A stretch of DNA of 62,918 bases, filler included, from Perkinsus chesapeaki ATCC PRA-425 (taxonomy: Eukaryota; Protista; Perkinsozoa), in the NCBI GenBank assembly GCA_013115145.1. It is 14 parts of 14 records of this genome, joined end to end, with 100 filler letters (N's around TTAATTAATTAA, not from the genome) between each part and the next. Parts side by side here need not be neighbours in the genome. Positions count along the whole stretch, not along the records: positions 1 to 5,560 come from JAAPAO010001147.1; 13 more parts are not named here. One strand, written 5' to 3'. Shown here piece by piece: positions 1 through 28,000 of the stretch; the first letter of the stretch is position 1, and each line of letters begins with the position of its first letter. Position numbers and translations under genes: made by a program. The notes beneath the pieces are model-generated. The model searched no databases. It was not told the origin of the DNA and was given only the letters and a program-made list of their open reading frames with translations.

Positions 1-3000
1 TATTATCATCTATATTATTATATAACTAGTTAATCTATTTTATTGATATTGCACTGGTTATATTCTATTGATACATATAATTATGATGATATAAATTAAT
101 TGTAAATATCTAATATTAAGGATATATATGTATTATTCATTAGATCATAATATTATAATAAATACATTAGAGATCTTATATGATATTATATAATTACTTA
201 TGGTTATATTTATAATATATTATTATATTCTTAATCTAGTATAATATCATATAAATTATTAATAAAGACAGGGTATTATAATATTACAAGTTATAATTTT
301 AATACCTATAATTTATACTTAATATTAATTAATTAATATATTATATATTATTAATAAGAAGTAAATATATTATTTTTATCAATAAAATACTAGTAATAAA
401 GTAATATATATTTATATTAATCATATGATAATACCAATATACATTAGTACTTTATATTTTATATCTATATATCATATTATTTATTATTGTTTATTTATAA
501 TATTATTACAGGTTATATCTTATTCTTTATTAATAATAGGGGTTAATAGATAATCTATCATATAGGGATTATTATCTATATTATCACTAATTATTTATAA
601 GGGTCTCAATCATATTTATATTACCTTATTATAAAATAGAGACTCAGTTATATATTATTATAATTCCTAAGTTATATTATTATATTCCATATCTATATTT
701 ATAACCTATTATTATATAATGCTATATTATTAGTAATAAATATATTATAGTCTATTTATATTAATAATACCTGTATACTAGATATATCTATAATAATACA
801 CTATAAATATATATACTAGAAGTTAATATAATAATATGATATAATCTTTATTAAATAATATATGTTAAAATTAATATTAATACACCATGCAATATCAATA
901 GTATATACTAATATTAAATAATTATATTAATGCATGGTGTCTAGTTTATTAATATTAGATATTATAACTTATTAATAATATTGTATAAATATGATATTTA
1001 CTAGTCTATAAATTATCTAATAGATTTATATATAATATACTAATACTAGTGGTTATAGCTATATGAGTATAGCTATCTGTATATATTAATATTATAAGTT
1101 TATCATATTCAATACATTAGATTATTCCCAGCATTACATAAATATATAATATATATCAAATAACTGTATATTGAATATCTATATTTATATCATATAATTA
1201 CAAGTATTAAATTTATATTAAATTATATACTATTAGCCATTACTTTATATATATATCTATCTTAGGTATAATTAATATGAATATGGGATAAATAATAATA
1301 CCATATAATATAATACAAATAATATTTATTAATACATATATAATTAAAATATAATAATAGTTAGACCTGCATAATATAGATAAGAATACATTATATACTC
1401 ATATTTATATATTTAACTAATAATAGATTTATACCTTTATATATAATATCGAATAGCTAATATCTATCATAATAGATATTACATGTTAATATAGATATAA
1501 TTATTACTATATGCCCCTGCTATTACTTATTATATTATATTTAAGCAGGGGCTATTATTTATATTATAACTTTATAGACTATTATATCTAGTTCTAAGGT
1601 TATATAATTATAATAATATCTTTAATGGCTATTGTTAACTAGTAATATATAATCTAATATTTATATTGTTAATGCACCCCATAGAATAGATTTATAAAGA
1701 TATGTATACATATGTTATTATAAATATGATGCTAAAGCTATAAATAATATATATATGCCCCTAATGCTATATTATAAATTATATTATAATAATACTATAT
1801 TTATATCATTATATATAGTTAATAATAAATACTATTGGTTATATTATATATATCTCTATATTATATATTTATTAGTATTAAAAGATAGATAAACCTTAAT
1901 TAGTAGTTATAAAATTATAGATAATATGCATTATAAAGAATAATATATAAATATCGTATTATTACCAATCGCTTATTATTAATTATTATTATATATATCA
2001 TATTATTGCGATTGGTATATTATAGTATAAATTATGGATTATTAATAGTAATATTTATATAGATATCAATACAATTAATTATATATATTATAATACTATA
2101 CTTTATTAATATGATATATTGTTATAATTTAATACTGTTATTATTAATATAAGTTAATGTATACTATATAATATAATAAATTGATAGATTATTAATATTT
2201 AATTATTATAATGTTAATATATAGATAAAAATAAGGTAATAATGATATATAAATGTTAATATTAATCATTATATTATATAAATTATAGATATATCGTTAT
2301 CTTTATTAATAATATATATAGAATAGTGTATAATATCATATATTAAGTTGATAGATTATATTATAGTGTTATTAGTATATATTTTAATCTATTATATCTC
2401 TATTACTAGCTATTTATAATTATATATTAAATATATGGTATTACCTTATTAATATAAATATCACTAATGATTATATTCACTATTAGATATATACTATTAA
2501 ATATACATATAGATATATTATTAAAATATTAATAAATGCCTTACTAGTAATATCATGTATATTAATTATTAATATTAGAATATATGATATAATATAATGT
2601 ATAGAGCTATAACTATATATAATATATAATATAACAATAGAGATATTAGTCATATTAATACTAAATATTGATATTATAATACATTAATAACAGGTTTGAT
2701 AGATATATTATATATACATTTTAATAGATATCTTTAATATTATATTAGATTAACTATGGCATTATTCAATTATTAATAAGGTATTTTATAAATATATTAC
2801 TAATTAATATACAATAATAATATATTCCCATATTTATAATAATAATATATATAGATTTATACCATATAATCTTATTTATCCCTATCTATAGATTTAATAT
2901 ACCCCATTATTAATAGTATTTATAAATATAAGATATCATATAATAATATACAAAGAGATATAATTTATTAATATAATATATAGATTATTCTATACTTTAA

Positions 3001-5560
3001 TATAATATATAATTAATCTAATGATATAACTATGATAATGTATAATATTATATATATATTAATAAATATAATAAGGAATAAACTATTGTATATATTATAA
3101 ACATCAGATGATATTATATTAATACCAGGTTATCTAATATTTATTGTATTATTGTATATATTATACCACTATTTATATATATTTAATTATAACCTTTACT
3201 TAATATTATTATATGATTAGATAAACTATAAATACATATTTAAATCAATAAAATATTATATGTTATACTAATATTAATAATACATATGATAGACTAGTAA
3301 ATATTGATATTTAATAAATTATATTATATTCCTTATATTTATAACTAGATATACTATATATTACCTATTAAATATGATAATTCTATATTAATAATTTATA
3401 ACAAATAGTATTAATTATATATAGATCACTATGGATAATAATAATAAGATAAATTATAAGTATATAAGTAGTTTATAGTAAATAATGTAATTTTTATCTC
3501 ATTTGTATACTTTATTAATATATAATATATAATATTTATATTTTATTATAATAAGATTAGATTTATAATATAGATAGGCTATTATCTTATAATATATATT
3601 TATAACAGGTGATAATAGCCATAAAGATAGATATAATATATATATATAAAGATAGGGATAAATATACAATAGTTTATATTATAAATTATATTAGATCTCA
3701 TATATAGATAATATACCATAACTTAATATTTATTATATACTTATATCTATTATAATATGTTGTATAATGTATCATATATTATATAGAATTATCATATATT
3801 TATAATAAAAGGAATATATATTATATTAACTTATTAGATATAGATATATAGATAATTATAATAAGTAATAATTTATCCTAAGTTTATATAATAATAACTA
3901 TAAATAATATAATAATTTATTAGTGTATAATATATGTTATTAATATGGTTAGTTTATTATAATTAATGGGTAATATAGATCATATATACTATTATTATAT
4001 ATTAAATATTATAAGTATCAATATTAGATTATTAACTATTAGTAGTTATTATAATATATAAGGTGACCTACCAACATTAATAATTATATATCAATCTATA
4101 GTATATATTACCATATTTAATATTAAATCTATATTAAGATATTTATATATAAATATAAGATAACCAATGATTGCTAGTAATATAATTAATAAATATATTG
4201 ATAATGTTATAATATATGAATAGAGCACACCACATATTATATTATATAAAGCCAGCATTTTATTAATTATTATATATCTATGCTGGCTAATGGTGTGCAT
4301 TTATTATATTAATCTTATTACCTTAGATATGAATATATTATATTTATAATATATGAATTAAGGTATTTTATCTCACCCGGCCCATAATATAATAATAATG
4401 CAATGCACTAATATATATATAATTATTAATAAAGGTGCATTGCCTAGATAATATTATAATATATACTTTAACGATATATAATACTTTATATAGAGTTGTT
4501 TATCTATAACCAGCTGTATTATTATTTATATTTATACTATATCTTATTATTTATTAACAGCTGGTTTATTTATAATTTAATATATGCTAATCCTTGGAAT
4601 GTAATATCATATTAATTATGATATTAAGGATTAGCTAATAAAGGATAGATTTATATTGATAGGGTATAGTGGGTATTATTAATAATAGAGATAAATATAA
4701 TATTACTAATATAGAATATATATATATAAATATGTAATATAATAGATAGAATACTATATAAAGTAATATATACTAATTAATATTAATAAATAAGCACACA
4801 ACATATATTAATATCTTATCTTTTATTATAATATATTAACTTATTCTTTATAATTATTGTTATATTAATCTATGTCTATTATATACTTATTATTATAAAT
4901 CTAATTAATTATGTTATATTATATAAAGGGCAGGGTAGATATTTTATTATTATTAAATATTATATATTAAAGTATTATTAATAATAGTAGTATAGTATAG
5001 ATAATATAATTATTATGATATAAATATATATGGTATTGCTAAGAATATAATATTATAAATTAATAATAAATATATATAATTATGGTATACCTATAGATAA
5101 ATAATTAATAATGAGATATGTATATACTTTATCTATAATATTTATATATCTTATACTATTTATTATAATAGATATCTAATAGGATTAATAATATCAATAA
5201 ATCAGATAATAATATATAATAAATAGATGCACCCCCTTACTTTATATTATATTTATATTAGGGGGTGCTATAGATTACTGATATCATATTTAAATATATA
5301 TATGCTGTGCACCTGTATACTTAATATTAATTTATAGATTATATCTTATGGTAATATAATATAAGGAATTACTAAATTAATAATATCATATTAGGTATAG
5401 ATAGATAATCTTATAATATATATAAATCTATAATAATTAAATATATAATTAATACTTATAATACTATATATCTAATATAATGTATACTATATATAAATAT
5501 TACTATCTTATAATCTATAGTTTATTAATATCTTATTTAATACTAATATAATATAATATA
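1..5560. other. Extremely AT-rich non-coding contig with GC-clamped stem-loops; possibly mitochondrial DNA or NUMT
   Basis: Roughly 85-90% A+T by inspection, CpG very rare, no credible ORF. Inverted-repeat stems at 882-940, 1513-1552, 4225-4298, 4400-4443, 4508-4566 and 5229-5268. Mitochondrial origin is inference from the known AT-richness of myzozoan mtDNA. Confidence 0.5.
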
Positions 5561-5660
5561 NNNNNNNNNNNNNNNNNNNNNNNNNNNNNNNNNNNNNNNN
5601 NNNNTTAATTAATTAANNNNNNNNNNNNNNNNNNNNNNNNNNNNNNNNNNNNNNNNNNNN
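5561..5660. other. Assembly spacer (N-TTAATTAATTAA-N), first of 13
   Basis: Identical 100-base spacers at 5561, 7074, 9005, 19941, 37016, 38907, 40336, 41949, 44369, 50794, 52401, 53692 and 54836. The linker has stops in all six frames. Confidence 0.98.
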
Positions 5661-7073
5661 CGGTTGTTGAGCCTATCGTGGTTGGATCGTTAGATGATTC
5701 AACTAGACTTGTAGAAGTCCGCGATAGGCTGTTCAATTCGGGTTTCGGGTTTGTGGAAACCGTGGAGCAGTTCAATTCACTGCCGAAACAAGTGGAGTTG
5801 AGTACATCCTATAAGATGTACCACTTCCACCTTCCACGTCTCCACTTGATCCATAGTGGTATCGTTCTGGGACGTTGTCCCGGAACCTTATGTGATGGAC
5901 AAGTGGAGAAGGGTAAACAGTGTGGCTGCGTGAGTAACAGTAACGCAGTCACGAAGTGGGTGGTGGAACTGACTCTGGGGTGTGACGAGTTGACCAAGCC
6001 ATTCACCATCACTAGTCATAAATTGACAGAGGTGTTTGCTGACCCCAAGGCTATACTCGTAAGTCCTTCGCTCTATATACTCCACAGTTTTTCTTATCAG
6101 GGCTCATGTCCTGTTAGCGGCTACCGGATGAGGACTGCTATCCAAGATATCATCACATTGGTAAACGAAGGAGGAGGATGGGTGGCTTCCGCCTGGATAA
6201 AACCAGGACGAGCCAGACCCAATGAAGACCCCGGCGTTATTGTGGAAGGAAAGCTCCACGTCTGTTCTTTAAAGATCGCGAAGCCAACTCTTCCACTACT
6301 CAATGCTTTGATAGAAAAACGGTGAGAATTTTAGCATGTCTCCTATTTCATCACTTCATTGTTAGGGTGAAACCTGCTCCGGTTAACACTAACGTCAATG
6401 TTCAGCCGGCTTATCGTCAACGTGTTATGCTTAATCAAGCCCAACAACAAGGTAGGATTACATTATGTTGTTTTCTAGTGATTTTTTTCGTGTTAGGTTT
6501 GGCCAATCAAAATATACTAAATCTCAATATGCCAAGTACGTCTAACTAGCGATTTCTTCGGCACATTACTGTACTCTCAGACCCCCCAGCACAACAACCA
6601 GCTAACGCGCCCAATCCCGGTCTAATTGCCGGGCAACAGGTAGTTTATCTTTATCGCTTGATTATCTAACTCGCTCACTTTAGTGGGCTGTCATTCTGCA
6701 TATGTTGTAATTACAACTGAACTTATGTTGAACTTATCTGTCTGAATCGTTGTCTTACTTTAAATCATCCATTAATTATACTCATGTCTTCAGGTTCAGA
6801 ATGTACCACTACAACAGCCACCACAACAACAACAGCCACCACAACAACAGCCACAGCAACAACAGGCACAACAGCCGCAACAACAACAACAGCTGCTTGA
6901 ATTACTACAACAGCAAATGCAACAAATACAGCAGCTACAACAGCAAATAGTCAATCAACAACTACAACAACAGCAACAGTTACAACAATTACAACAGCAG
7001 CAGCAGCAACAACAACAGGCAAATCAACAGCAAAGTGGACAAAACCAACGCCGCGATCAAGGTGGATTCGTGG
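5661..7073 (+). CDS. Partial spliced gene: Cys-rich (zinc-ribbon-like) N-terminal domain followed by a polyglutamine region
   Basis: ORF 5678-6325 ends at a GTGAG donor (~6322). Further short exons with GT-AG boundaries lead into QQPPQQQQ/polyQ at 6790-7070. Contains CPGTLCDG..KQCGC. Truncated by gaps. Confidence 0.65.
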
Positions 7074-7173
7074 NNNNNNNNNNNNNNNNNNNNNNNNNNN
7101 NNNNNNNNNNNNNNNNNTTAATTAATTAANNNNNNNNNNNNNNNNNNNNNNNNNNNNNNNNNNNNNNNNNNNN

Positions 7174-7245
<72 letters not shown>
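7174..7245. repeat. (TAC)n microsatellite
   Basis: About 24 perfect TAC units at the contig start. Confidence 0.97.
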
Positions 7246-7246
<1 letters not shown>

Positions 7247-7599
7247 GAAGTATCCGAATTCCTACGGCACAGCAGCACCAGCACTCTCTAGTGGATTCGT
7301 TCGGGACTACCTTGTGGATTTTCGCAGCACAGCTCCTTCATATTTTGAAATACTAACATTACTATTGTTGCTCTCAGTTCTCCTTCAACCCTGGCCTCCT
7401 CGACCACTCCACCTACTGGTCCGACTCGAGTCTGTCTAACCTCTGTCAGAAGTTGAGGCTTCCGGTACGGTCTTGCCGCAGTCTTTCATACTAACAACAA
7501 TTATGCAGGCCACCGGCTCTCGAGAGGAGATCATCCACCGCCTTCGTACCTGGCATGCGGCGCACAACCCCAATGGGCCGACCCCAGGAGTGCCGAGTT

Positions 7600-8302
7600 A
7601 CCGAGCTACAAGTCAGCTGCTGCTTGCGGTCAGCGGATATTTATTTTAGAGGCGCGCGGTTTTCAGGTGGAAACTTCTGTCTTATCGCCGTCAAGGAAGG
7701 GTTGGTGGCGGAGAAGTTCAAAAGTCCGTTTAAGCGCAAAAATGGATTGGCGTCCAAGCCCATCCTGAGGTACTCTGCACGCGCACAGTTACTCAACCAA
7801 TTCTCTCTTGCAGAAAAGTGTCATCATACAGTCCCACGTCATTCGCTAAAGCGGCCGATCCACTGCTGCCGGTCGTCGAGTCTCCGAGAGGGTTCAAACG
7901 CCCGGGCAGCTCGTACAGCAGTCCAGAGACCGGCGGCAGGCTCTCTCCTTGCAAGGAGCGTCGTCGAAGGTAGTCCCGAGAAAGTCACGCGCCAGGATAT
8001 TGAATAGCCCTGTTCAGTATCTGTCCACCGATGAACCCTACCGATTCTGAAGGGGAGTCCGATAAAACCGCCGAGCGGAGTCTGCCTCTCAAGCAGGAGG
8101 CGAGACTCGGGCAACTAACAGCAACTCCGGCGAAGTCGTAGGCTACACGGAGATTAGCCATCTGCAGTGTTATGGCTAGCAGGTCTCGGGGTGGAATGAC
8201 TTCTGAGAGCTCCACTAAGCGCAAACGCAGAAGGGTCCAGTTTTCCCCGTAAGCTGCAGAAAGAGCGGTAAAGACGCTCCGAGCGTGATTTGGCAGGTTC
8301 AA
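7600..8302 (-). pseudogene. Degenerate, frameshifted ORF of unknown (possibly retroelement) origin
   Basis: Protein-like segments continue across frames (7985-8302, 7839-8114, then ALANDVGLYDDTFLQ...EYLRMGLDANPF). No diagnostic motif. Confidence 0.3.
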
Positions 8303-16807: not shown

Positions 16808-18843
16808 CTACTGCTTACGCTTCTCGATGAGGCCACTATAATGGCAGGTGCCATCATAGTAGATGCAGAGTGGATCAACTTCTCGAGTGGCGTTGAAAAT
16901 GGTCGCTATGACCGCCAACTCTCTTTCTCCCGCCCAAGCCTTGGGATCGCGCATGCTCGATACATACTGTTCCCACGTAGGTCTTGGAGGTAATCCCCTG
17001 CTACGGAAGATTGCCTGACCAATGTCAGAAGCACACTCTGCTTCCCAACTGTCCTGTAGAGGAGGGTTGTTCTGCAGAATGTTGCAGACTTCGTGGCGGA
17101 GAATTAACGGGAAATCCTCAACGTTCTTGTCGCGTATACAGCTTGGCAACCTCCCAGGAAGAGCATTGGCTGAGACAGAGATTGCGTAAAAGAGGCAAGC
17201 CCCATCGCCAGGAACGATGATGCGGTAGTACTCTTTATTACGCAGGACCCACGTATAGTGTCCTCAGGACACTGTCCTGGTCCTTCTGTTCTCCACCAGT
17301 ACGTCGGGAATGTGTCGGTTGTTTGAGCGGGCATGTTGCGCCACTCATGAGCGGGTTGCAACACATTGCCATCAAATCCCCGATCAACATCCCTAAATCC
17401 ACGACGTTTTGACGCGTTTCCTTCATACAGAACAACGTGCGCTCTCCAGCCTGCACCGTATTGGGAGATAATATCTCGCATAGCATCGGTGTAGGACTTG
17501 AAACTTTCAAGTCGGTGTCACGAGCTTTCAAGTTGAAAGCTCGTGACACCGACTTGTTCCCTTTCTTTTGAGCCGCCTTTTTTAGGCTGTAAGCAATTAG
17601 TCCTTGCTTATTTTTAGCTCCAGAAAAGGGTCGGCGCCACTTCACGACTCGGTAGAGGGTTAGCGCCAAATTATCGTCTAGTATATTGACGTCGCTACTC
17701 CTAATCGTTCAGTTCATTCCCGTCTCCACACATTGAATAACCAAAACCACAATATAGTAAATTACCAATCGATACTGAGAGTAGTCAGTAAAGAAGTACA
17801 TAATGTTATGAATGAGCGAGTATACTTAACAATACTAGCGCTAAGATATCACAGCTCAGAACACAATTACACAATGCATAACGCATCATGCGTTAGATCA
17901 TTCATCACATTAACCCGCTGGTCCAGTGTTCGCCCTTTCGGGTATGTAGACTTCGCGGTCTTCCGGTTGTACCTCTCCCACTGGGGGAGGTGTAGAAGGG
18001 CGGGTTTCGTGTAGTGTAACGTCCTCGTTATAAATACGCAAATAAAAGTGATAAGCCTCGCGACCTTTATCGAACAGTTGTTGTGCGTAATCATTGGTCT
18101 CCCCGAACAAGTTAATCAAATAAGCAGAGAAATATGTGAGGTCCTTAGGGAAGGCATTTCTGTTGTCCCCACTGGCCAGTTCAAGTTTCTCTGCGACTTT
18201 GAGTGCCTTGTCGGTTAAACTCAGATAGTCCGCAAATTTAACTGTTTCATCATCATTGTCATCATTTTCTCTTTCTCTTTTCTTTTTCTTGACAATAGTA
18301 GCAGCCGCAGTAGCGGAAGTTGTAGCAGCAGCAGTAGCAGTAGCCCGATTAGTTGCGTATCGTTCCGCCTCTGCCCGTCTCGTTTCCCAATAGCCCGGCA
18401 CCGTCAATGCACCGGTAGTTCGGCGACATCCTGGTGCCGGGCTAGGTAGGGTCGGAGAGGGCTGAGAGGGCAGAGAGGGCGGAGAGGGTGGTGAGGGCGG
18501 AGAGGGTGGTGAGCCTGAGATAGGAATACAAACGATATAAAACAGAGCATGCTTACCGGCAGGGGTGGGAGGCGTAGCGAGGGTAGGGAATGCGGCACTA
18601 GCAACTGCAGAACTATCACCTAATAAATATGAAATGTGTTAAGTATCGCGGATCGGATATGATCGGCTTACCTCCTGCGTACTGCCGAATACGTCCGACA
18701 CCCATTAAAAGAGCGAGATTCGCTCTTTCAAGTACATAAATCCTATGTTTTAATTTATGTACCTCATTTTTGAGGTGGTGGGAGCGGTTGCTCCTGGCCA
18801 CCGTCTTCTTGCACGCCCCGCAGTACCAAGTCTCCGCGGGCAT
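16808..18843 (-). pseudogene. Degraded copy (B) of the C2H2-finger / unknown domain / OTU protease gene
   Basis: Exon 1 has WYCGACKKTVARSNRSHHLKNEVH. Two GTAAG..AG introns splice in frame through a Pro-rich exon into ORF 17910-18407. 72/84 aa identity to 46675-46926. OTU motifs VPGDGACLF and YDGTCHYSGL. Frameshifting insertions at ~17265 and ~17530. Confidence 0.85.
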
Positions 18844-18879
18844 TTATTAAAACACTACTGATGATATGATGATATTTAT

Positions 18880-18926
18880 ATTGTTACTACTACTACTACT
18901 ATTACTACTACTACCACTACTACTAC
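18880..18926. repeat. Imperfect (TAC)n microsatellite upstream of the zinc-finger exon
   Basis: TACTACTAC run with interruptions. Confidence 0.85.
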
Positions 18927-21900
18927 AACTTCTATTTGTACATTACCTACTCTAAATTATTAAATTTCTAAGCTCTAGTACTCTTCACCTGCTCTAAATA
19001 ATTAAATTTCCTAGCTCTACTACACTACTAGGAATTAAAATATTTAATTTTCTAGACCCCACTAGTAGTAGGGAGGCTGGCTGCCAGCCAGCCTCAGGTT
19101 TCACCTATGTGTTGAGCGTCTCAACTGACGACAGGCCGATGTCATGATGGCATAGGAGGTAAATCAAACCCCTGATGTTGGTAGATTTACTCGATATAAA
19201 AATCGAGGCGACGCCTCGGGCACTCTCTATTGTATGGTCTGAGCCGCTGGTTAACTCCCACTCCTCTGCGTTCGCGTCATAGATGCGAAGGTACGTCAGT
19301 GGAAGGTTGGCGGTAGTCACATGGTGACCACTCTTGAGGAAACTGATCGTCCCTACTATGACGTCGAGGAGGCAGTTCAGGAAATTATAACCCTCCGTTT
19401 CAGCAAAAATGGTGTCCCAGCGAGCTTTGGGCAAACGGACATCCGCGCTGCCAAAAACGATGGGGCTATCTAACCGATCTGACTCAGATCATCTGAGAAG
19501 TCATAGTGGTGGCACAACGCATAGTTGACGTTGATGAGCCTCATCAGATGAGGCCGAGTGCTGCCAGCACTGACAAGGATCCCGACAAGCGCGGAATCAC
19601 CGAGTCGGTTTCGAATACGAGTGCAGCTGCGTCAGGGAATACAGCAAGCTAGGCGTTGAACCTATTGACGACAAATGGCCTAATCGAGACCAATACCACG
19701 CTTGGGCAGAGCGTCTCGTCTTCGCCGTCTACCACGTCAGGGTCGACAGCTACGTATGGGGTCCGCGTATGGTTTCGAAACCCACGACCTTGGAGCGCAT
19801 GGTGCCAGCGAGGTCCGGGCTTCCAATGCCATAGGGCTGTGTGTAATGGACAACCAGGCTCACCACCTAATCAATGAAACCAAGTGAGATGACCACAGTG
19901 TTATATACGAGTTCTGGCGACCGATTCGATTCATTGAACTNNNNNNNNNNNNNNNNNNNNNNNNNNNNNNNNNNNNNNNNNNNNTTAATTAATTAANNNN
20001 NNNNNNNNNNNNNNNNNNNNNNNNNNNNNNNNNNNNNNNNAAATAGTTTGACACATTTTATAATTGGATAAAACTCACTAATAATTCTACTTGTGTTAAC
20101 TCAATACTCAACACCCAGTCACGGAAAGTCTTAAGAAGTTACCTGCGTGAGTGTAGACCGCTGACGAACTAATGCGTAATTGCAACCGCATCATATGATC
20201 TGCATTTTTCATCCTCACATGAGGTCGTAGCGAAGCAGACATTCGAGGCCTTTACCAGTAAGGCACTTTCTAGAACTCAGCCCGTCTTTACGCAACTCAA
20301 GCGATTACCGCAGAGATCTTATTGATACTGTTTCATCAACTTGATACTGATTGATCAATTTAATTAATTAGTTTAATTTTATTATTTCAATTATTTAATT
20401 AGAATAGTCCAGACTCGTTTGAAGTGGCATTAAACGCCGCCAGACTAACAACAGGGTGGGTAAAATGTAGATCCATCTGTGCTGTAGAAGAAATAATTAA
20501 AGAGAAGGTCTCGTTGAGAACTGAATCAACCGTGTACAGTCTAACACCGAGCGTACCGATACACTCCTAAGTTACCTGATCTAATAATAATGCGAGCCTC
20601 AGATTCTGAGCTCGTGAATGAAAAGTAATTGCAGTTCCTTAGCTATTTTAGAAGTCGCTCCTTCGCCTCGTATGTACCAAGTTTACAGTTGTTCGACTCT
20701 CACGTCACACTCAATAGTCAACGGCTCACTGCAAGCTTCCTCTACCAATGATATTCACACTCACCATCCTCGGCTTATGCTGGTCCATTCAGGCTGACTA
20801 CTCGTCCGGATCCTACTTCAAGGAGATCGATAATACTGTGTTCAGACTTCATCGATGAACACACCGAATTCTCTACCCGACGTCGTACTATCTATATGGT
20901 CTGATGGACACCAGTGCCTGTCAGACCGTATGAATGTTGTGTCCCTCATTGATGGGTTTTGTGTGTAGCACAAGATATTGTGTGTAGCGTAAAATAGCGT
21001 GCTTGTAGGGAGCGCACGTTGTGTGTTGGTTGCACCACCCGTGGCAGTTTCGGGGTCATCCGGGGTTGAGTTTATGGTATCTTCGCAGTTACGCAAGGTT
21101 CCAAACCTCTATTTTTTTCGTTTCCTCTGGGAGGCGCCAGTCTTGCTCCTCTGAAGGCGATTTGTCTAAGGAAAACTCTCGCCACTCTTAGAAGCATCCT
21201 GGCCCTGCGATACCTTATCGGAGCGTTCTAGCAGAACTTACTCCTGATCCAGGTATCGCCTCTTCCGAAGCTCCCGGAGAGGAAAGCGGTTTTATGGCTA
21301 ACATCATTAACCTCGACTCCACTAATGACTCCGATACGCTTACGCTCTTGTCTACCAACTAGGGGTATGCATCTCTCAAATCCACGTGAGCAATATCAGA
21401 CCCTGATATGGTGGAGTCGCGAAGGATCCGTGCACATTCTTAGCTATCCATTTCTTTCAGTTTGTTGTAAGGTGCAGAGCCCCGCGGCGGCCATTAATCC
21501 AATGACTAATCAATACGACAGCTCAAACGATCGTTGTATGTCAGCAATTCTTACGCCAATATCATTGTGCAATCTGGCAGTCATTGTGTTAGTCAGCCTT
21601 CTTGGAAAAACCTTGAAGAACCCTGAGGTTGGCGGCTCATCCTCTAGCGTCCTCTAATAGAGCGCTGAAGTTTGAAGAGCAGAAGTGTGATGAATATGGA
21701 AAAACGATACATGGGGCTTGACAATAGTCAGCCTACAGTTTTTCAATGAGAATTTCTCATATAATCAATGTATCAAAACTTCTCCGGTTTCTTGGGATCT
21801 CCGTCTGTCCGAGTTGTCGAGTTGAGCTGAACGATATTGATCAAGCATTGCAAAATATGATAATTTTGTGGAAGCGCGATTTTTGGCAGTTCAACAAGAT

Positions 21901-22055
21901 CCGACTGGGGGAACGAAGATATAATCACCCAAATGACTATCGTGATTTATACACCCCGCATGTATGAGAGTGTGTATCCGGGAGCCTGGAGCAAATAACT
22001 CTAGTCGAAGTTATTGGGAAATAGTAATCAATATTCAACTTTATTTAATGGAATC

Positions 22056-23400
22056 TTATTTGATCGATAATGCAGTACCATAGCTACGGTGTGCGCTACG
22101 GGGACATAACACAACGGGACAATCGTACACAAGTCTCACAATTTTCCCCTCCTCAAGAGGATAAGGATTATCATAACCATAACGGTTAGGCTTGCGTATA
22201 ATTCGTCCATACACGATGCATATCTTCATGTACTCTAGGGGGATGTTGTTGTTGTAAAGCAGCATTAGTGACGGTTTCTGAGATGGGGGAGATATTCTTG
22301 CTTGCCTAGGCTGATGCTTACGAGTAGGAGGTACCAGTGATAGATCAGCTTCATCTAATCGCAGACGATTTACATGACAAGTAAAAGTATGACCAGTTCG
22401 ATCCACACATATACAATAAGTAACCGGACCAAGTTTCTTGAGACAAGTAAATCCTCTTCTCCAATGAGTTGATATCTTGGAACGTAAAGAATCGAAGTAT
22501 ACCAGAACCGGAGTACATTGTGGTATATCGGCAGGAGCTTTGGCTTTCTTATTGAACTGCCTTTGATACGTAGACTTTGCTGCTACTAACTGGCCATTTA
22601 CATAATCTATAATAGTTGCATGTGCTTCATCATGTGGTCGAGCATTAGACATATATTGGGGTAGCATAAGGTAGGGATAATGTGGACGTGTTCCAAACAT
22701 AACCTCAAAAGGTGTCAACTTGACACTGTCAAGCCAATATAGCTCTGTTTAGCAGTATTATGCTGGTAAACCAATTTTGGTAAGGCTTGGGTCCAGTTCC
22801 CATTAGTAGTCGTAATTAAGTACGATTCGATACGATCCAATAGAACTCGATGGAACCTTTCTACTTGACCATTACTTGCTGGATGAGCAACAGAAGGGTA
22901 TCTAACCATTATACCATATTGATTTAACTGTTCTCGATACTTATCATTATCAAAATTCTTCCCACGGTCACTAACCATTGTATCTGGTACCCCATAAATA
23001 TAAAAGATACGAGATAAGGTACTAAGAGTAGTATTAACTGTCTCATCAGGAACCAAGACTGCCACCGCCCATTTGCTGGAATGACAGCACATTGCAAGTA
23101 ACTTTTCACCATCTATGGTGAGAAAGTCAACTGAAACCACCTGCCAAGGCCTCGTTGCATAATGTACACGAAGTGATGCCGGTCGTGAAGACCTTTTTCT
23201 CAATGTACATGCTGGACACTTCTTGACAAATGAAAATAAATATTGTTATATATTTGCTCGCCAAATAGGCTAATATTCATCATTGCCTGCCTCTCAGTAT
23301 ATAGCCTGGTACACACACTCCTAACTTGTCATATTATGCTATATCTTGGCATAAGCGTGGCTGGCCAACATGCCAACATTGTTGGCTTGTGAATCACAAG
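22056..23400 (-). mobile_element. Ty3/Gypsy-type integrase, frameshifted pseudogene
   Basis: VKKCPAC (HHCC remnant), RPWQVVSVDF, YGVPDTMVSDRG, HPASNGQVERFH (DDE core), then TPFEVMFG and LGPVTY...HVNRLR in the next frame. Stops upstream; possible protease remnant VDT near 23845. Confidence 0.9.
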
Positions 23401-25000
23401 TTGTGATATACACTTCATCCGTTTGTGACCCAACTTCCTATATATCAGGCTGATATACATTCGTCCTAGAACTCGCTCTATGAAACATAGACCTACACTC
23501 TACTCCTCCTCTCGCGACCCCAGCGACTGTCTAGAGTTGGAAAGGTATCGGGTGTTGGTCAGCACGCGGTAAGCCCTGATGCTCCCACCGCAATGCTGAC
23601 GCGTTCAAACTCCTATAACCTTAACATCCGCACGGCACCGTACACCCGTCCTTTATTGTAGGTACTGCCGCTGCGATGTACACCGCCCCGTACGGCGGCC
23701 ATATCAGCAGACTGCCGGCAGTCACTGCCCAGTCGCTGTAAGGAGTGAACGCCCTCTCCAGCCCAACCCCGATCCCACGCCACTCCCCGACGTCGCGCCA
23801 AACGTGACAGTGCCAACAGCGCCCTCACGACACAGGTAGTATCAACCAACCTGTCACCAACGACCTAGCCATCTACCTGCGACACCAGCGTTCGGGTGTT
23901 GACTTCAACACGCCTACCTCCCAACAGGCACAATTTATGGAATAAACTTCATTCTATGGCGGCATGCTCGAGAGTTGCAAGTCTACACATTCAGATGTCG
24001 TGTCCGTCGGTATCTACTCGCAATTTTGACATAGATAATCTCTACGTCGCCGCCAGTGAGACCGCCATAGGTTGCTTAAAGAATGTCGCAGATGGTAAGC
24101 CATCATTAGGCGGCATCCACCTGATTTTTGCATAGGTTTCGGGGAGGTGTCAGTGTCGCTTGCCATGCTAAATTCGCAACTGTATAGTCCTGTGACTATT
24201 GTGATGTACAGTGATAGCACACTGGCACACGATGAGCAAGAGGTGCGTCATCCGGTGACTTACACCACTTGTCACATCTTCTCCCACACTTCTCGGAAAA
24301 GAAGCGGTTTTACAGGTTGTTGTCGACAAGCAGACAGGAACGTCTCGCGGCTAAGGTTTCATTTCATTTGATAACTGTGATGCGGCTGGGAGAACTGTAC
24401 ACGTCATGCCTGGTCTTGGCGGTCGGAATCGTAAAGTCTTGGCGGTGGGTGTCGGAATTAGCGTTGCCAATGGACGAAATTGCTGAGTGTTCGTTAATAG
24501 TCCGAAGACTCTTCGGCGGAGAGTCGTTTAAAGCGATAGTAAGTGATGTACTCCCGGATCGGGACTGTCCCGGTGGGATATGTAATATCTCTGCTCAGTC
24601 ATGGCGTTGCATTAATGTGATACTGTGTCTGAGACAGTGTATCATCTCCGGTAGGACATCGGATGCTCTACCGCGTTGTTCAACATCCGGTATCCAAGCA
24701 ACGTGACAGTAGCATCTCGATTGAGCTTCCTTGGTGAATTCGAAGGCTCTGACTCGCGGTTTTCACTCCAAGCTTCCAACGCAACTGGTGCTAAAACAGG
24801 ACAAACAGGTACTTTGATGAGGTTACTAAGTTTCTCAGCTGCTCTACCAGTTACAGTTGACTACGAAATGACTTGTCTGATGAGCTGAGATGGGGTTATT
24901 AAAACACAGCCCACAACGGTAGAACGGAGCCGAGCCGTTCATACTAGCGGCAGTGGTTAAAAAAAGCATACGATGCTCAAGGACGCTAAGTGAGCACCTT

Positions 25001-25037
25001 GATACGGTATCACCAACTCAGTTGGTGATACCGTATC
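25001..25037. repeat. Perfect 18-bp-arm palindrome
   Basis: GATACGGTATCACCAACT-C-AGTTGGTGATACCGTATC. Confidence 0.95.
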
Positions 25038-28000
25038 CAGTTGGTCCAACTGGGTATCAATCATCATCGACTGCGATCATGAGATGCACAGCTCCGCTAG
25101 GCAAGCCACTTATTCACAGCTTCGAGAATGCCCTCCACAACGTTCCTGATTGAACAACCGGATAACTTTACGAAAAGAACTCCACGAATTCAATAATAAA
25201 ATTAAAGAGCCTTGACCGCTAAGGAGAAGTTTCCGTGGATAAGCAACTCTCACTACTTACTTGTCGGAGTGACCACACCAGTAGCAATGTGACGCGCCCT
25301 TCACCTGCGGGAGGTATTTGAGTCGGCTATTATATTTAAGCGTTCGTTATATCTCACCCACATAACATCGAGGCCCTTTCTTGCTTCAGTGATCGAAGAT
25401 GGATACCAAGGATCGGCATCACCATTAATGGATAATATATTTGTAGTTTTATCCAAGTCTTTCTCAATGTACCGCTGAAAGTCTGCGATGTTCTTAAGTA
25501 TCTTGCCAACTCGAAATCACATAATCTATTGTACACGACAGCATACCTCATCCTTGGACAGTCCGAAGCCTTCTTTACACGCCATGAGCCAGAAGTCAAC
25601 CGAGCTTTTAGTTGTATAGAAAGGACAGCTTCCTCTGCTGCACTCCAGGAACCCTTGAGTGTTGCATTTTCCGAAGAACCCTAATCTGAGTGGGCTGTTG
25701 TCCATTCTATTCTTTAATCTGCAAACATCGGGTCTTCCGTAAAGAACACGAAGTTTGAACTGTATTGTCACTAACCTACTGTATTACAAATCAAAAAATA
25801 ATCTCGCCGAAAGCATTCGACAATATCCAGGCTTGAGCGGTTGATTTGTATTATAGATGTCAGCCAGCTTGTCGAGCGCAGGGTCACTAAATAAGAAGGA
25901 CGAGATCAGAAACTGAAATTTGACCTTACCTTCCTTTCGTAAGTCGATCACATATCCTCTTTATGTTGCAGTAAAGAATCCTTAATCCACAGTTAGGATC
26001 ACTATTCTGTAGCTCCATCCCTAGTAAACCGGCATCAACCGTGCTGACAAGCTCAATGATGTAAATGAAAATCGGAATAGTATCAATATTTACATGTATG
26101 TCTGATTCTTAACATCTTCGAGGACCCCAGCACAAATTCTAAGTTTTTCCTCGACCTCTCGGCGTCCTTCAGCTGTCTCCATGGACATGGCAAAATCCAT
26201 GTGTGCTTTGGTAAGCTACGAGAGATTTACAACTGCCCAAGGGCGACGGTTCTTATAACTCACCGTAGCCAGACATTGTGGACTACCTCCGAGGCTTGGG
26301 TTAGATAAGTCTTGGGATACGACGGAGTAGTACCTAAGCAGACTCGGTATATCACAGTCATTAAGTACGTGTAATTCTGAGCTCAGAATTCCGATTTGCA
26401 CGACGTCAGAATTAATAGTTATTAGCAAGCTATTAGCGACTAGTTATTAACCATTAGTTAGCTTTTTACAGGCTGAATGAAGCCCAGATGCACTCTATAC
26501 AGATAGCCTGTAAATTAAACGAATCCAATACACTCAAACTTCCCGGATGACCGACTCATAGTTTGCCAGTTCAAACTTGAATACAGCTGAGGACGTGACA
26601 GCTCCAATGAAGATGTCTCGGTGTTTCTTTCGGGCCAGAGCGGCGATAAGCTGAAACGCTCGATTTGGCTTTGACCGAGTAGTGCGAGATTCGTGCCCCG
26701 GCACCGCTGCATCCAAATAGGACTATCTTCACTCCAGGCTCTTTAGTCTGTAAGTCCCTCCCGAAGGCTGCGACATCAGCGATCATTTGCTCCATCGAGA
26801 AAAACCTCTTGAGCGTTTCGGTAGAGTATTCTTGTGTGGGAAAGCTAGTTCATGTGAAGTCAAAGCGAGGCTTACTGGATTTGTCGCATTGAAGGAATCA
26901 TAGTCTTCCATATACTTCTGTGAAAAGGTGCCAGCTCCCGGACCTAAAAATCGTAAGCGTTCTTTGAATGGTGCTTGTGTTTTATCCGGCCAACACACCC
27001 GCTGAGGAAACTCCTAGGTAACACACAAGAATCGATAGATCTACATTTACGCTGCCTAGGCATCTAGCCGTCCCATACTTAGCAGGGCTAGGCTAGCACA
27101 TTACGCATTAGCCTGCACGAATTTACCTTTTGAGTGGTCTATCGGCTGTTGAAAGGACAGACGGTCCCAGCGACCCAACTGCGAAAGGCTACGGCCCCCG
27201 GGCAAGGCTTGCCTGAGCAACAGAATGGAATAATTATCATATCATCGAATTTATTCAGCGTCGTTGTGGAGAATGGCGGCCGTGATGATGTCTGCAGTAT
27301 ATCCCTCCTCACGCGCTAAGAAAATCCGTGAAATTGTGGACGGCTCCTGACCAATGGAGGAAGCCAAGGAGGAGAGTAGTGAGCATGCTTCGAGTAGGCA
27401 GCGGTAAATGTCTGACAAGGTGGCAAAGACGAATGTATATAGGCAAGGCAACAGAACCCGCACGTCCGCGCAGAACACAGTTGAACCGCGACAGAGCCGT
27501 GAACATGGAACCGGTTCTGTCTACCCCTTCCCCTCCAGTTTGTTGAGCACCTCGAGACCCAGTTTGTGACGCTCGCGAGCCCCGCCAATGACTCCGCGTT
27601 ACTCTATCTGTTAAATAGAGTCGGTAGCTGACTGAGACCTTCTCTTTCGAAAGCGAAAATTCGACTCATAAGCGCCACTTATGGGGCTCAGCAGCCTACT
27701 CAGCGGCTGAGCCCCGGCTCGGAGTCGCTCTTGCGTACAGATGAGTGCGGCACTCAGAATGCCTCATAATCCAAGATAATCACGTTTATAACACTCGCAG
27801 GCGTATATCATGATCACAGTTCATATTCTCACAGAGCCACTGATCACTTGCCAGCGCTGATTTGCGTCTTTGAGATCCTGAGTTCTTATCGATCATTGCG
27901 CCGCGCTCCCGCGCTTTTAGTACAGCTCCACGCCGTGGAGTCCACGGGAACCCACGGCCACGGTGGCGGCGCCACCATACTGACGGGCGTTGCTATGGTT

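Follow-up and report, generated by a model that had tools for sequence, protein, structure and literature searches.

Contig C3504 of the clam parasite Perkinsus chesapeaki, which makes up positions 1-5,560 of the window in its entire length of 5,560 bp, is non-coding, gene-poor mitochondrial DNA (mtDNA). It holds ten perfect inverted repeats with arms of 8-10 bp that contain at least four guanines or cytosines (G/C) each, and with loops of 21-58 nt. These hairpins belong to a real, discrete and polarised class of stem-loops with Watson-Crick pairs throughout, which is also present on other mitochondrial contigs of this organism. We give roughly an even chance to the reading that the hairpins are maintained on the DNA as strand-switch sites, as the perkinsid counterpart of dinophycean repeats, and are not mRNA punctuation. 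GC-clamped stem-loops were apparently undescribed in Perkinsus: hairpins are not mentioned by Gornik et al. (2022), and literature searches yielded no later description.

Perfect, polarised hairpins in the mitochondrial contigs

The initial annotation had listed seven stems in C3504 as perfect inverted repeats (a nested pair counted as two). All seven were confirmed, and three more (1963-2017, 3577-3620 and 4586-4635) had been missed. Dinucleotide shuffling, the control proposed there, gives 0.02 hairpins expected (300 shuffles) against the 10 present, and a control in which the intact G/C clusters of the contig change places and orientation at random gives 0.14. Folded as single-stranded DNA, all ten hairpins form as predicted, with free energies (dG) of -7.5 to -16.5 kcal/mol and z-scores of -2.9 to -5.5. 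Five of them are clustered within 4225-4635 (Table 1). Two statements of the initial annotation went too far: hairpin arms account for about half of the clusters with at least four G/C (18 of 35) and not for most of them, and the loops exceed the range of 20-45 nt given for them.

A census covered non-redundant mitochondrial contigs of P. chesapeaki with a total of 34.1 kb, and two assemblies carry the class. It comprises 48 distinct hairpins against 0.33 expected from shuffles, which corresponds to about one hairpin per 0.7 kb of non-coding mtDNA (~1.4 per kb). Inverted repeats in nuclear contigs stay near shuffle expectation. The arms measure 8-12 bp, mostly 9-10 (at least 9 bp in 39 of the 48, more than 9 bp in 17), and contain 4-7 G/C. 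Loops span 20-67 nt, with 20-48 nt in 42 hairpins; the remaining six have larger loops or form the outer stem of a nested pair. The mitochondrial contigs contain no GC-rich stems with loops shorter than 20 nt or of 81-150 nt, and under a uniform distribution over 3-80 nt the probability of finding no loop below 20 nt is 7.5e-6. The GC content of the loops is 9%, compared to a background of 14.6%. An excess of hairpins exists only for arms with at least four G/C and loops of at least 20 nt, while arms with 0-3 G/C and all short-loop repeats occur at or below expectation. General template-switch mutation was excluded as a source, since AT-only and low-GC inverted repeats are not in excess.

The stems are either perfect or absent. 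A mismatch-tolerant search revealed practically no further stems in C3504 and only one extra stem, with a T-G pair, across the 34 kb, and there are virtually no wobble pairs among about 450 stem pairs. The claim of a C-rich 5' arm independent of the strand was borne out: C exceeds G in the 5' arm of nine hairpins of C3504, with a tie in one, and of all 48 hairpins 34 have C>G and 8 have G>C, the other 6 being tied (binomial p = 7e-5). In total the 5' arms contain 161 C and 95 G, with A and T balanced. As the 5' arm is C-rich whichever strand is read, the polarity is strand-symmetric. Two further claims stand in part. The stems are indeed low in CpG, but CpG poverty is a trait of the entire P. 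chesapeaki mtDNA (observed/expected 0-0.3) and not specific to stems, and one of the missed stems (1963-2017) contains a CpG, the only one of the ten to do so. Within C3504 each stem is different, but the arms share a loose profile (R-Y-N-C-C...T-G-Y), and three stems (GCCCCTGCT, ATGCTGTGT and ATGGCCAGC) recur at separate mitochondrial loci with unrelated loops or flanks; the stem of 1513-1552 reappears at 2011-2056 of C3503 with an unrelated loop.

Such recurrence and the common profile would fit palindromic elements, selfish or neutral and without function for the host, whose spread or persistence would rely on hairpin-templated correction; palindromic repeats and GC clusters in the mtDNA of fungi, algae and sponges are comparable. 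Furthermore, in all five nested pairs the inner hairpin sits close to one of the outer arms, at 0-2 nt, and is 12-18 nt away from the opposite one (2 and 17 nt for 4250-4288 in C3504), as if one element had lodged at the arm of another. The hairpins are restricted to gene-poor DNA, and their sequences are apparently species-specific, with little intergenic sequence common to species according to Gornik et al. (2022). Nevertheless, there is no repeated family, loops and flanks are unrelated, and neither motif enrichment nor target duplication was found in the hairpin flanks. Decayed copies are missing, although roughly every second of the larger G/C clusters is unpaired, and the narrow geometry of arms and loops together with the polarity suggests constraint. 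We regard this explanation as unlikely.

GC clusters of yeast mtDNA form repeated sequence families and are CpG-rich, whereas the Perkinsus stems are nearly all different, nearly all CpG-free, and have arms parted by at least 20 nt of AT sequence. Where the same stem occurs more than once, the loops are unrelated, and no common flanks or target sites were seen. Both kinds of element are G+C islands in very AT-rich non-coding mtDNA and often palindromic; for the GC clusters and ori/rep elements of Saccharomyces, PMC9054137 cites de Zamaroczy and Bernardi (1986) on illegitimate recombination, excision and the initiation of replication and transcription.

A 'GAGATAAA / CTATGGAG' word beside several P. 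atlanticus hairpins was considered as a promoter or processing motif and rejected, as it is not enriched beside P. chesapeaki hairpins. A covariation test among paralogues was ruled out because all alignments between mitochondrial contigs are compositional, with 65-68% identity.

Table 1 Hairpins and published putative ribosomal RNA fragments in C3504 (window coordinates, dG in kcal/mol)
Feature	Position	Arms (5'/3')	Loop	Remarks
Hairpin	882-891/931-940	10 bp, ACACCATGCA/TGCATGGTGT	39 nt, AT-rich	dG -10.7, z -4.0
Hairpin	1513-1521/1544-1552	9 bp, GCCCCTGCT/AGCAGGGGC	22 nt	
Hairpin	1963-1972/2008-2017	10 bp, TACCAATCGC/GCGATTGGTA	35 nt	overlaps start of SSUB
Hairpin	3577-3586/3611-3620	10 bp, GGCTATTATC/GATAATAGCC	24 nt	weakest of the class: 4 G/C, C=G
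Nested pair, outer	4225-4232/4291-4298	8 bp, GCACACCA/TGGTGTGC		dG -16.5, z -4.8
Nested pair, inner	4250-4258/4280-4288	9 bp, AGCCAGCAT/ATGCTGGCT	21 nt	
Hairpin	4400-4408/4435-4443	9 bp, GCAATGCAC/GTGCATTGC	26 nt	published sequence identical
Hairpin	4508-4517/4557-4566	10 bp, AACCAGCTGT/ACAGCTGGTT	39 nt	published sequence identical, same loop orientation
Hairpin	4586-4595/4626-4635	10 bp, GCTAATCCTT/AAGGATTAGC	30 nt, with own AT stem	dG -13.5, z -5.5; published sequence identical
Hairpin	5229-5237/5260-5268	9 bp, GCACCCCCT/AGGGGGTGC	22 nt	
RNA16	1628-1652			putative rRNA fragment
SSUB	1997-2113			low-confidence putative rRNA fragment
RNA10	3050-3122			putative rRNA fragment
RNA1	3225-3309			putative rRNA fragment

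Some of the unpaired G/C clusters of C3504 are arm-like. At 601-647 the sequence GGGTCTC...GAGACTC is a single C-to-T change short of a stem, and the clusters GCACCCC, GCCCCTAATGCT and GCACACAAC are present at 1674-1680, 1757-1768 and 4794-4802, respectively. These may be leftovers of lost hairpins.

Mitochondrial identity and gene content of C3504

C3504 is the reverse complement of positions 16,967-22,526 of Pche_mt_02, the published P. chesapeaki mtDNA molecule 2 (Gornik et al. 2022). Stem words were searched in the supplementary GenBank files of that study, which located C3504 itself; a window position w converts to position p of Pche_mt_02 by p = 22,527 - w. Identity was checked over two stretches, and no difference was seen there: window 4406-4646 is the exact reverse complement of 17,881-18,121, and window 1-626 that of 21,901-22,526. 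The organellar, myzozoan origin suggested by the initial annotation is thereby confirmed and the heterochromatic alternative, which it had also named, was wrong.

The assembly (41.7 Mb, 3,544 contigs) ends in a mitochondrial block, since contigs C3503-C3515 near its end have a GC content of only 12.5-17% and cox1 (C3511) and cob (C3540) lie within the block. A new length-sorted series of contigs starts at C3503; seven of the eight examined contigs just before it are at least 8 kb long and have 44-48% GC. The eighth, C3501, has 29% GC. Over positions 1-8020 its GC content stays at 22-36%, unlike that of the nuclear (44-48%) and the mitochondrial (13-17%) contigs, and it carries a type III glutamine synthetase split across two open reading frames (ORFs; 2192-3139 and 3457-4272). 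C3501 may represent either foreign DNA or an AT-rich part of the nuclear genome.

C3504 has a GC content of 14.4% and a CpG observed/expected ratio of 0.24. TA and AT are over-represented and AA and TT are depleted to 0.58-0.60 of expectation. This TpA excess and AA/TT deficit, together with a genome of fungal size, had led to a first hypothesis of a fungal nuclear repeat degraded by repeat-induced point mutation (RIP), and RIP-type indices are indeed satisfied (TpA/ApT 1.05; (CpA+TpG)/(ApC+GpT) 0.89). The hypothesis was dropped because cox1 with Perkinsus-type frame breaks has the same composition and C3504 matches the published mtDNA. In general, the chance that there is no feature at all, be it for RIP, for chance repeats in low-complexity DNA or for an assembly artefact, is practically negligible: the shuffles speak against it for C3504 as well as for the 34 kb, the organism is a perkinsid, and the identical sequence was published from an independent PacBio+Illumina assembly (Gornik et al. 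2022).

The cox1 gene lies on the small neighbouring contig C3511, which has 17% GC and the same dinucleotide profile as C3504, and its reading frame is broken by single-base TAGG and CCCCT interruptions, a hallmark of mitochondrial genes in Perkinsus (PMC2952869, PMC9550989). The TAGG insertions and the CCCCT site within 95-1500 of C3511 are the +1/+2 programmed frameshifts known from Perkinsus. An AT-rich hairpin with a short loop, CAATCATAA-GG-TTATGATTG, was noticed 3' of cox1.

In C3504 itself only five ORFs were found, of 42-69 amino acids (aa) and all of low complexity, with none above 69 aa, and an exact-sequence look-up of the 69-aa ORF gave no match. Rfam searches of C3504 and 12 other mitochondrial contigs gave nothing credible (for C3504 only two chance matches at E<=10), and a tRNA search of the same contigs found none. 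The annotation of Pche_mt_02 across this range consists of four putative ribosomal RNA (rRNA) fragments only (Table 1). None of the four has Rfam support from rRNA models (E<=10), comparable low-score published rRNA-fragment features are contained in the cox1 coding sequence of P. atlanticus, and the four annotations look weak.

Possible roles of the hairpins

Any function that we infer for the hairpins rests on sequence. The structure appears to be kept against AT pressure, as the initial annotation had proposed, because the excess is limited to stems with at least four G/C and decaying mismatched stems are essentially absent. Among the roles named there, namely recombination, replication and RNA processing, the evidence rather favours recombination or replication acting on DNA. 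It points to DNA rather than to one RNA strand because wobble pairs are lacking, the polarity is strand-symmetric and three contig ends and one fold-back contig coincide exactly with hairpins. It leans against mRNA processing because no hairpins flank cox1 or, by eye, cob and cox3. The 2.2-kb cox1 contig contains no hairpin of the class. By eye, no hairpins were seen within or beside cob and cox3 of the published molecule, and its first 6 kb, with cox3, cob and several fragments, show two hairpins only, both of the minority polarity. C3504 is the hairpin-rich, gene-poor portion of the mtDNA. The published Perkinsus mtDNAs are GenBank records ON035645-ON035649; statements on four of them, P. 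chesapeaki molecule 1 and three other Perkinsus species, were likewise read by eye from the published text.

In the proposed mechanism the stems would be kept intact by selection or by arm-to-arm correction on DNA and would work while the mtDNA is single-stranded. A hairpin would be a place where a polymerase or a recombination intermediate swaps strands, by fold-back or by loop inversion. Strand swapping of this kind would feed the rearrangement-prone behaviour of myzozoan mtDNA, and the hairpins would not act as punctuation for the three mRNAs.

Contig ends and palindromes bear on this mechanism. Contig C3510 (1-2307) is a near-perfect 2.3-kb fold-back palindrome with arms at 1-1123 and 1185-2307, and its centre is a hairpin with 12-bp arms and an asymmetric loop of 35 nt. 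In the published assembly this hairpin (Pche_mt_02 22,963-23,021) has a unique left flank, and contig C3544 starts exactly with its arm. The start of C3515 coincides with the first base of the 3' arm in another hairpin, which is complete in C3526; the overlap of the two contigs (73 nt) begins at the hairpin arm, and at its other end C3515 stops exactly with a different arm. Three arm-precise ends were found among about 28 contig ends examined, compared to 0.1-0.2 expected by a rough estimate from ~2.8 inner arm boundaries per kb, and are unlikely to coincide with arm boundaries by chance. Such ends are what fold-back strand switching or hairpin loop inversion would give. C3510 and C3544 represent either fold-back isomers in the cell or hairpin-primed library chimeras.

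Short inverted repeats are known to nucleate large palindromes after a nearby break, as in Tetrahymena rDNA and in yeast models, and a palindrome around a 12-bp inverted repeat such as C3510 is the expected product of this mechanism. Unlike in those systems, a single hairpin is concerned here, perhaps as a library artefact, and two other palindromic contigs have AT-only inner ends. The idea that hairpins occupy the centres of all large palindromic contigs was accordingly rejected, as it applies to C3510 only and not to C3503 and C3505. The latter two are whole-contig palindromes with arms of 2,758 and 2,259 bp and spacers of 286 and 206 nt, respectively, with a single arm mismatch in C3503, and C3518 is probably a whole-contig palindrome too. 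P. chesapeaki mtDNA seems to have large inverted repeats that are not mentioned in the main text of the genome paper.

Several points weigh against a role in strand switching. Hairpins are involved in only three of the ~28 contig ends and in one of three palindromic contigs, and none of the ten hairpins of C3504 lies at a contig break. The fold-back contig and the arm-precise ends could stem from hairpin-primed chimeras formed during library preparation, and no heteroplasmy was reported by the published study (Gornik et al. 2022). Cruciform extrusion of 9-bp stems with loops of 20-45 nt is energetically implausible in duplex DNA; the model therefore requires single-stranded intermediates, which are hypothetical in Perkinsus. 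Conservation of an orthologous stem was seen by eye for one hairpin of P. chesapeaki and P. atlanticus only; the stems of a second orthologue, found in P. atlanticus and P. olseni, are identical too, but with only 2 differences over ~70 positions of the region this comparison has no power.

The conserved hairpin is of interest for another explanation, by which the hairpins form in primary transcripts, perhaps of both strands. There they would either mark sites of RNA processing or make the termini of small mitochondrial RNAs, for example the fragmented rRNAs, more stable. The stem of the conserved hairpin, ACCATGCCCT/AGGGCATGGT (1003-1067 of C3508), directly follows, on the 3' side, a block of ~45 nt, and both are common to P. 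chesapeaki (C3508, 960-1067) and P. atlanticus (~61-195); the arms are kept and the loop has diverged. The region is without annotation in the published record and may be an overlooked RNA gene or signal. The published set of rRNA fragments is incomplete, and dinophycean inverted repeats at gene boundaries have been suggested to affect transcripts (PMC3268668, PMC7800619). Nevertheless, selection on one RNA strand should tolerate G-U pairs, which the stems virtually lack, and the strand-symmetric polarity and the hairpin-free surroundings of cox1 and, by eye, of cob and cox3 speak against such a role. Furthermore, the hairpins are densest where no credible annotation exists, loops of at least 20 nt make poor RNA hairpins, and the Rfam and tRNA searches gave no match. 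We consider a role in transcripts rather unlikely.

Priming of replication would be a DNA-level role different from strand switching. The vertebrate origin of light-strand replication (OriL) has a GC-rich stem and a loop, its 5' arm is pyrimidine- or C-rich, and it works only on displaced single-stranded DNA. On displaced mtDNA of Perkinsus, the loop of a hairpin would recruit the mitochondrial RNA polymerase or a primase, and the C-rich 5' arm would template an annealed G-rich primer. A GC stem whose long AT loop is easy to bind would suit such a function, and the C-rich 5' arm on either strand, as in human OriL, may be taken as a lead only. Yeast GC clusters have also been implicated in the initiation of replication and transcription (PMC9054137). 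In contrast to vertebrate OriL, which occurs once per genome and has a T-run in the loop, the Perkinsus hairpins occur in dozens per genome; their loops contain no T-runs (the longest has 3) and no T/A asymmetry along the loop. A density of ~1.4 per kb far exceeds the need of an origin. We consider priming of this type improbable.

Comparable repeats in Perkinsus and dinoflagellates

The same hairpin class is present in the three other sequenced Perkinsus mtDNAs, as seen by eye. An example from P. marinus is ATGCCCTCC/GGAGGGCAT at ~25,871-25,935, and P. atlanticus and P. olseni have several hairpins. Between most Perkinsus species the intergenic sequence is not alignable, and P. olseni and P. 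atlanticus form the sole pair whose spacers can be aligned. The spacer of P. marinus at 18,241-26,100 contains abundant CpG words (acgata, tcgtaa, ggtaagcg) and a recurring 'ctatagagataaa'-like word, and its make-up is very unlike that of the almost CpG-free mtDNA of P. chesapeaki. A scan of metagenomes with cox1 for environmental perkinsid mtDNAs returned no AT-rich relatives.

In dinoflagellates, the mtDNAs of Crypthecodinium cohnii and Karlodinium micrum carry a second class of intergenic inverted repeats with arms of more than 9 nt at most 50 nt apart (Jackson et al. 2007, PMC2151934; Norman and Gray 2001). Their stems are G+C-rich, lie almost only in non-coding DNA and differ from the rRNA helices, which are imperfect (PMC2151934). 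The Perkinsus hairpins resemble them in arm length and spacing, in their G+C-rich stems within an A+T-rich genome, in being perfect and species-specific, and in being almost exclusively non-coding. Judged by these sequence features, they are probably the perkinsid counterpart of the dinophycean repeats. Differences exist in the setting, as P. chesapeaki mtDNA has 85% AT compared to ~70% in dinophyceans, and Perkinsus mtDNA is a simple genome of one or two molecules whereas dinophycean mtDNA is scrambled. The lower limit of 20 nt for the loops, the perfect-or-absent nature of the stems and the C-to-G polarity of the arms were measured in Perkinsus and were not found described for dinoflagellates in PMC2151934 or PMC3268668. 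A dinoflagellate-like metagenome contig (Ga0115100_10911180, 32% GC, cox1 63% identical over 97 matched residues) carries five GC-rich inverted repeats at 1-250, just upstream of cox1; all five are perfect, and two nested pairs are among them.

The mitochondrial genomes of Perkinsus were published on account of their frameshifted genes, and ~90% of each is unexplained AT-rich spacer, in which the dense, discrete and apparently maintained stem-loops are the first recognisable structure. No such repeats were found in Hematodinium or Oxyrrhis by Jackson et al. (2012, PMC3268668), who called them a later-derived dinophycean trait. The hairpins in the sister lineage Perkinsus reopen this claim: either the repeats originated earlier and were then lost in places, or similar pressures led to convergence. 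It is conceivable, though rather doubtful, that polarised GC-clamped stem-loops are ancestral to dinozoan mtDNA, were lost in Hematodinium and Oxyrrhis, and act as a DNA-level strand-switch signal. If this were true, Perkinsus would have kept the system in a genome that is still simple, and the recombinational scrambling seen in dinoflagellate mtDNA would have resulted from the system running out of control.

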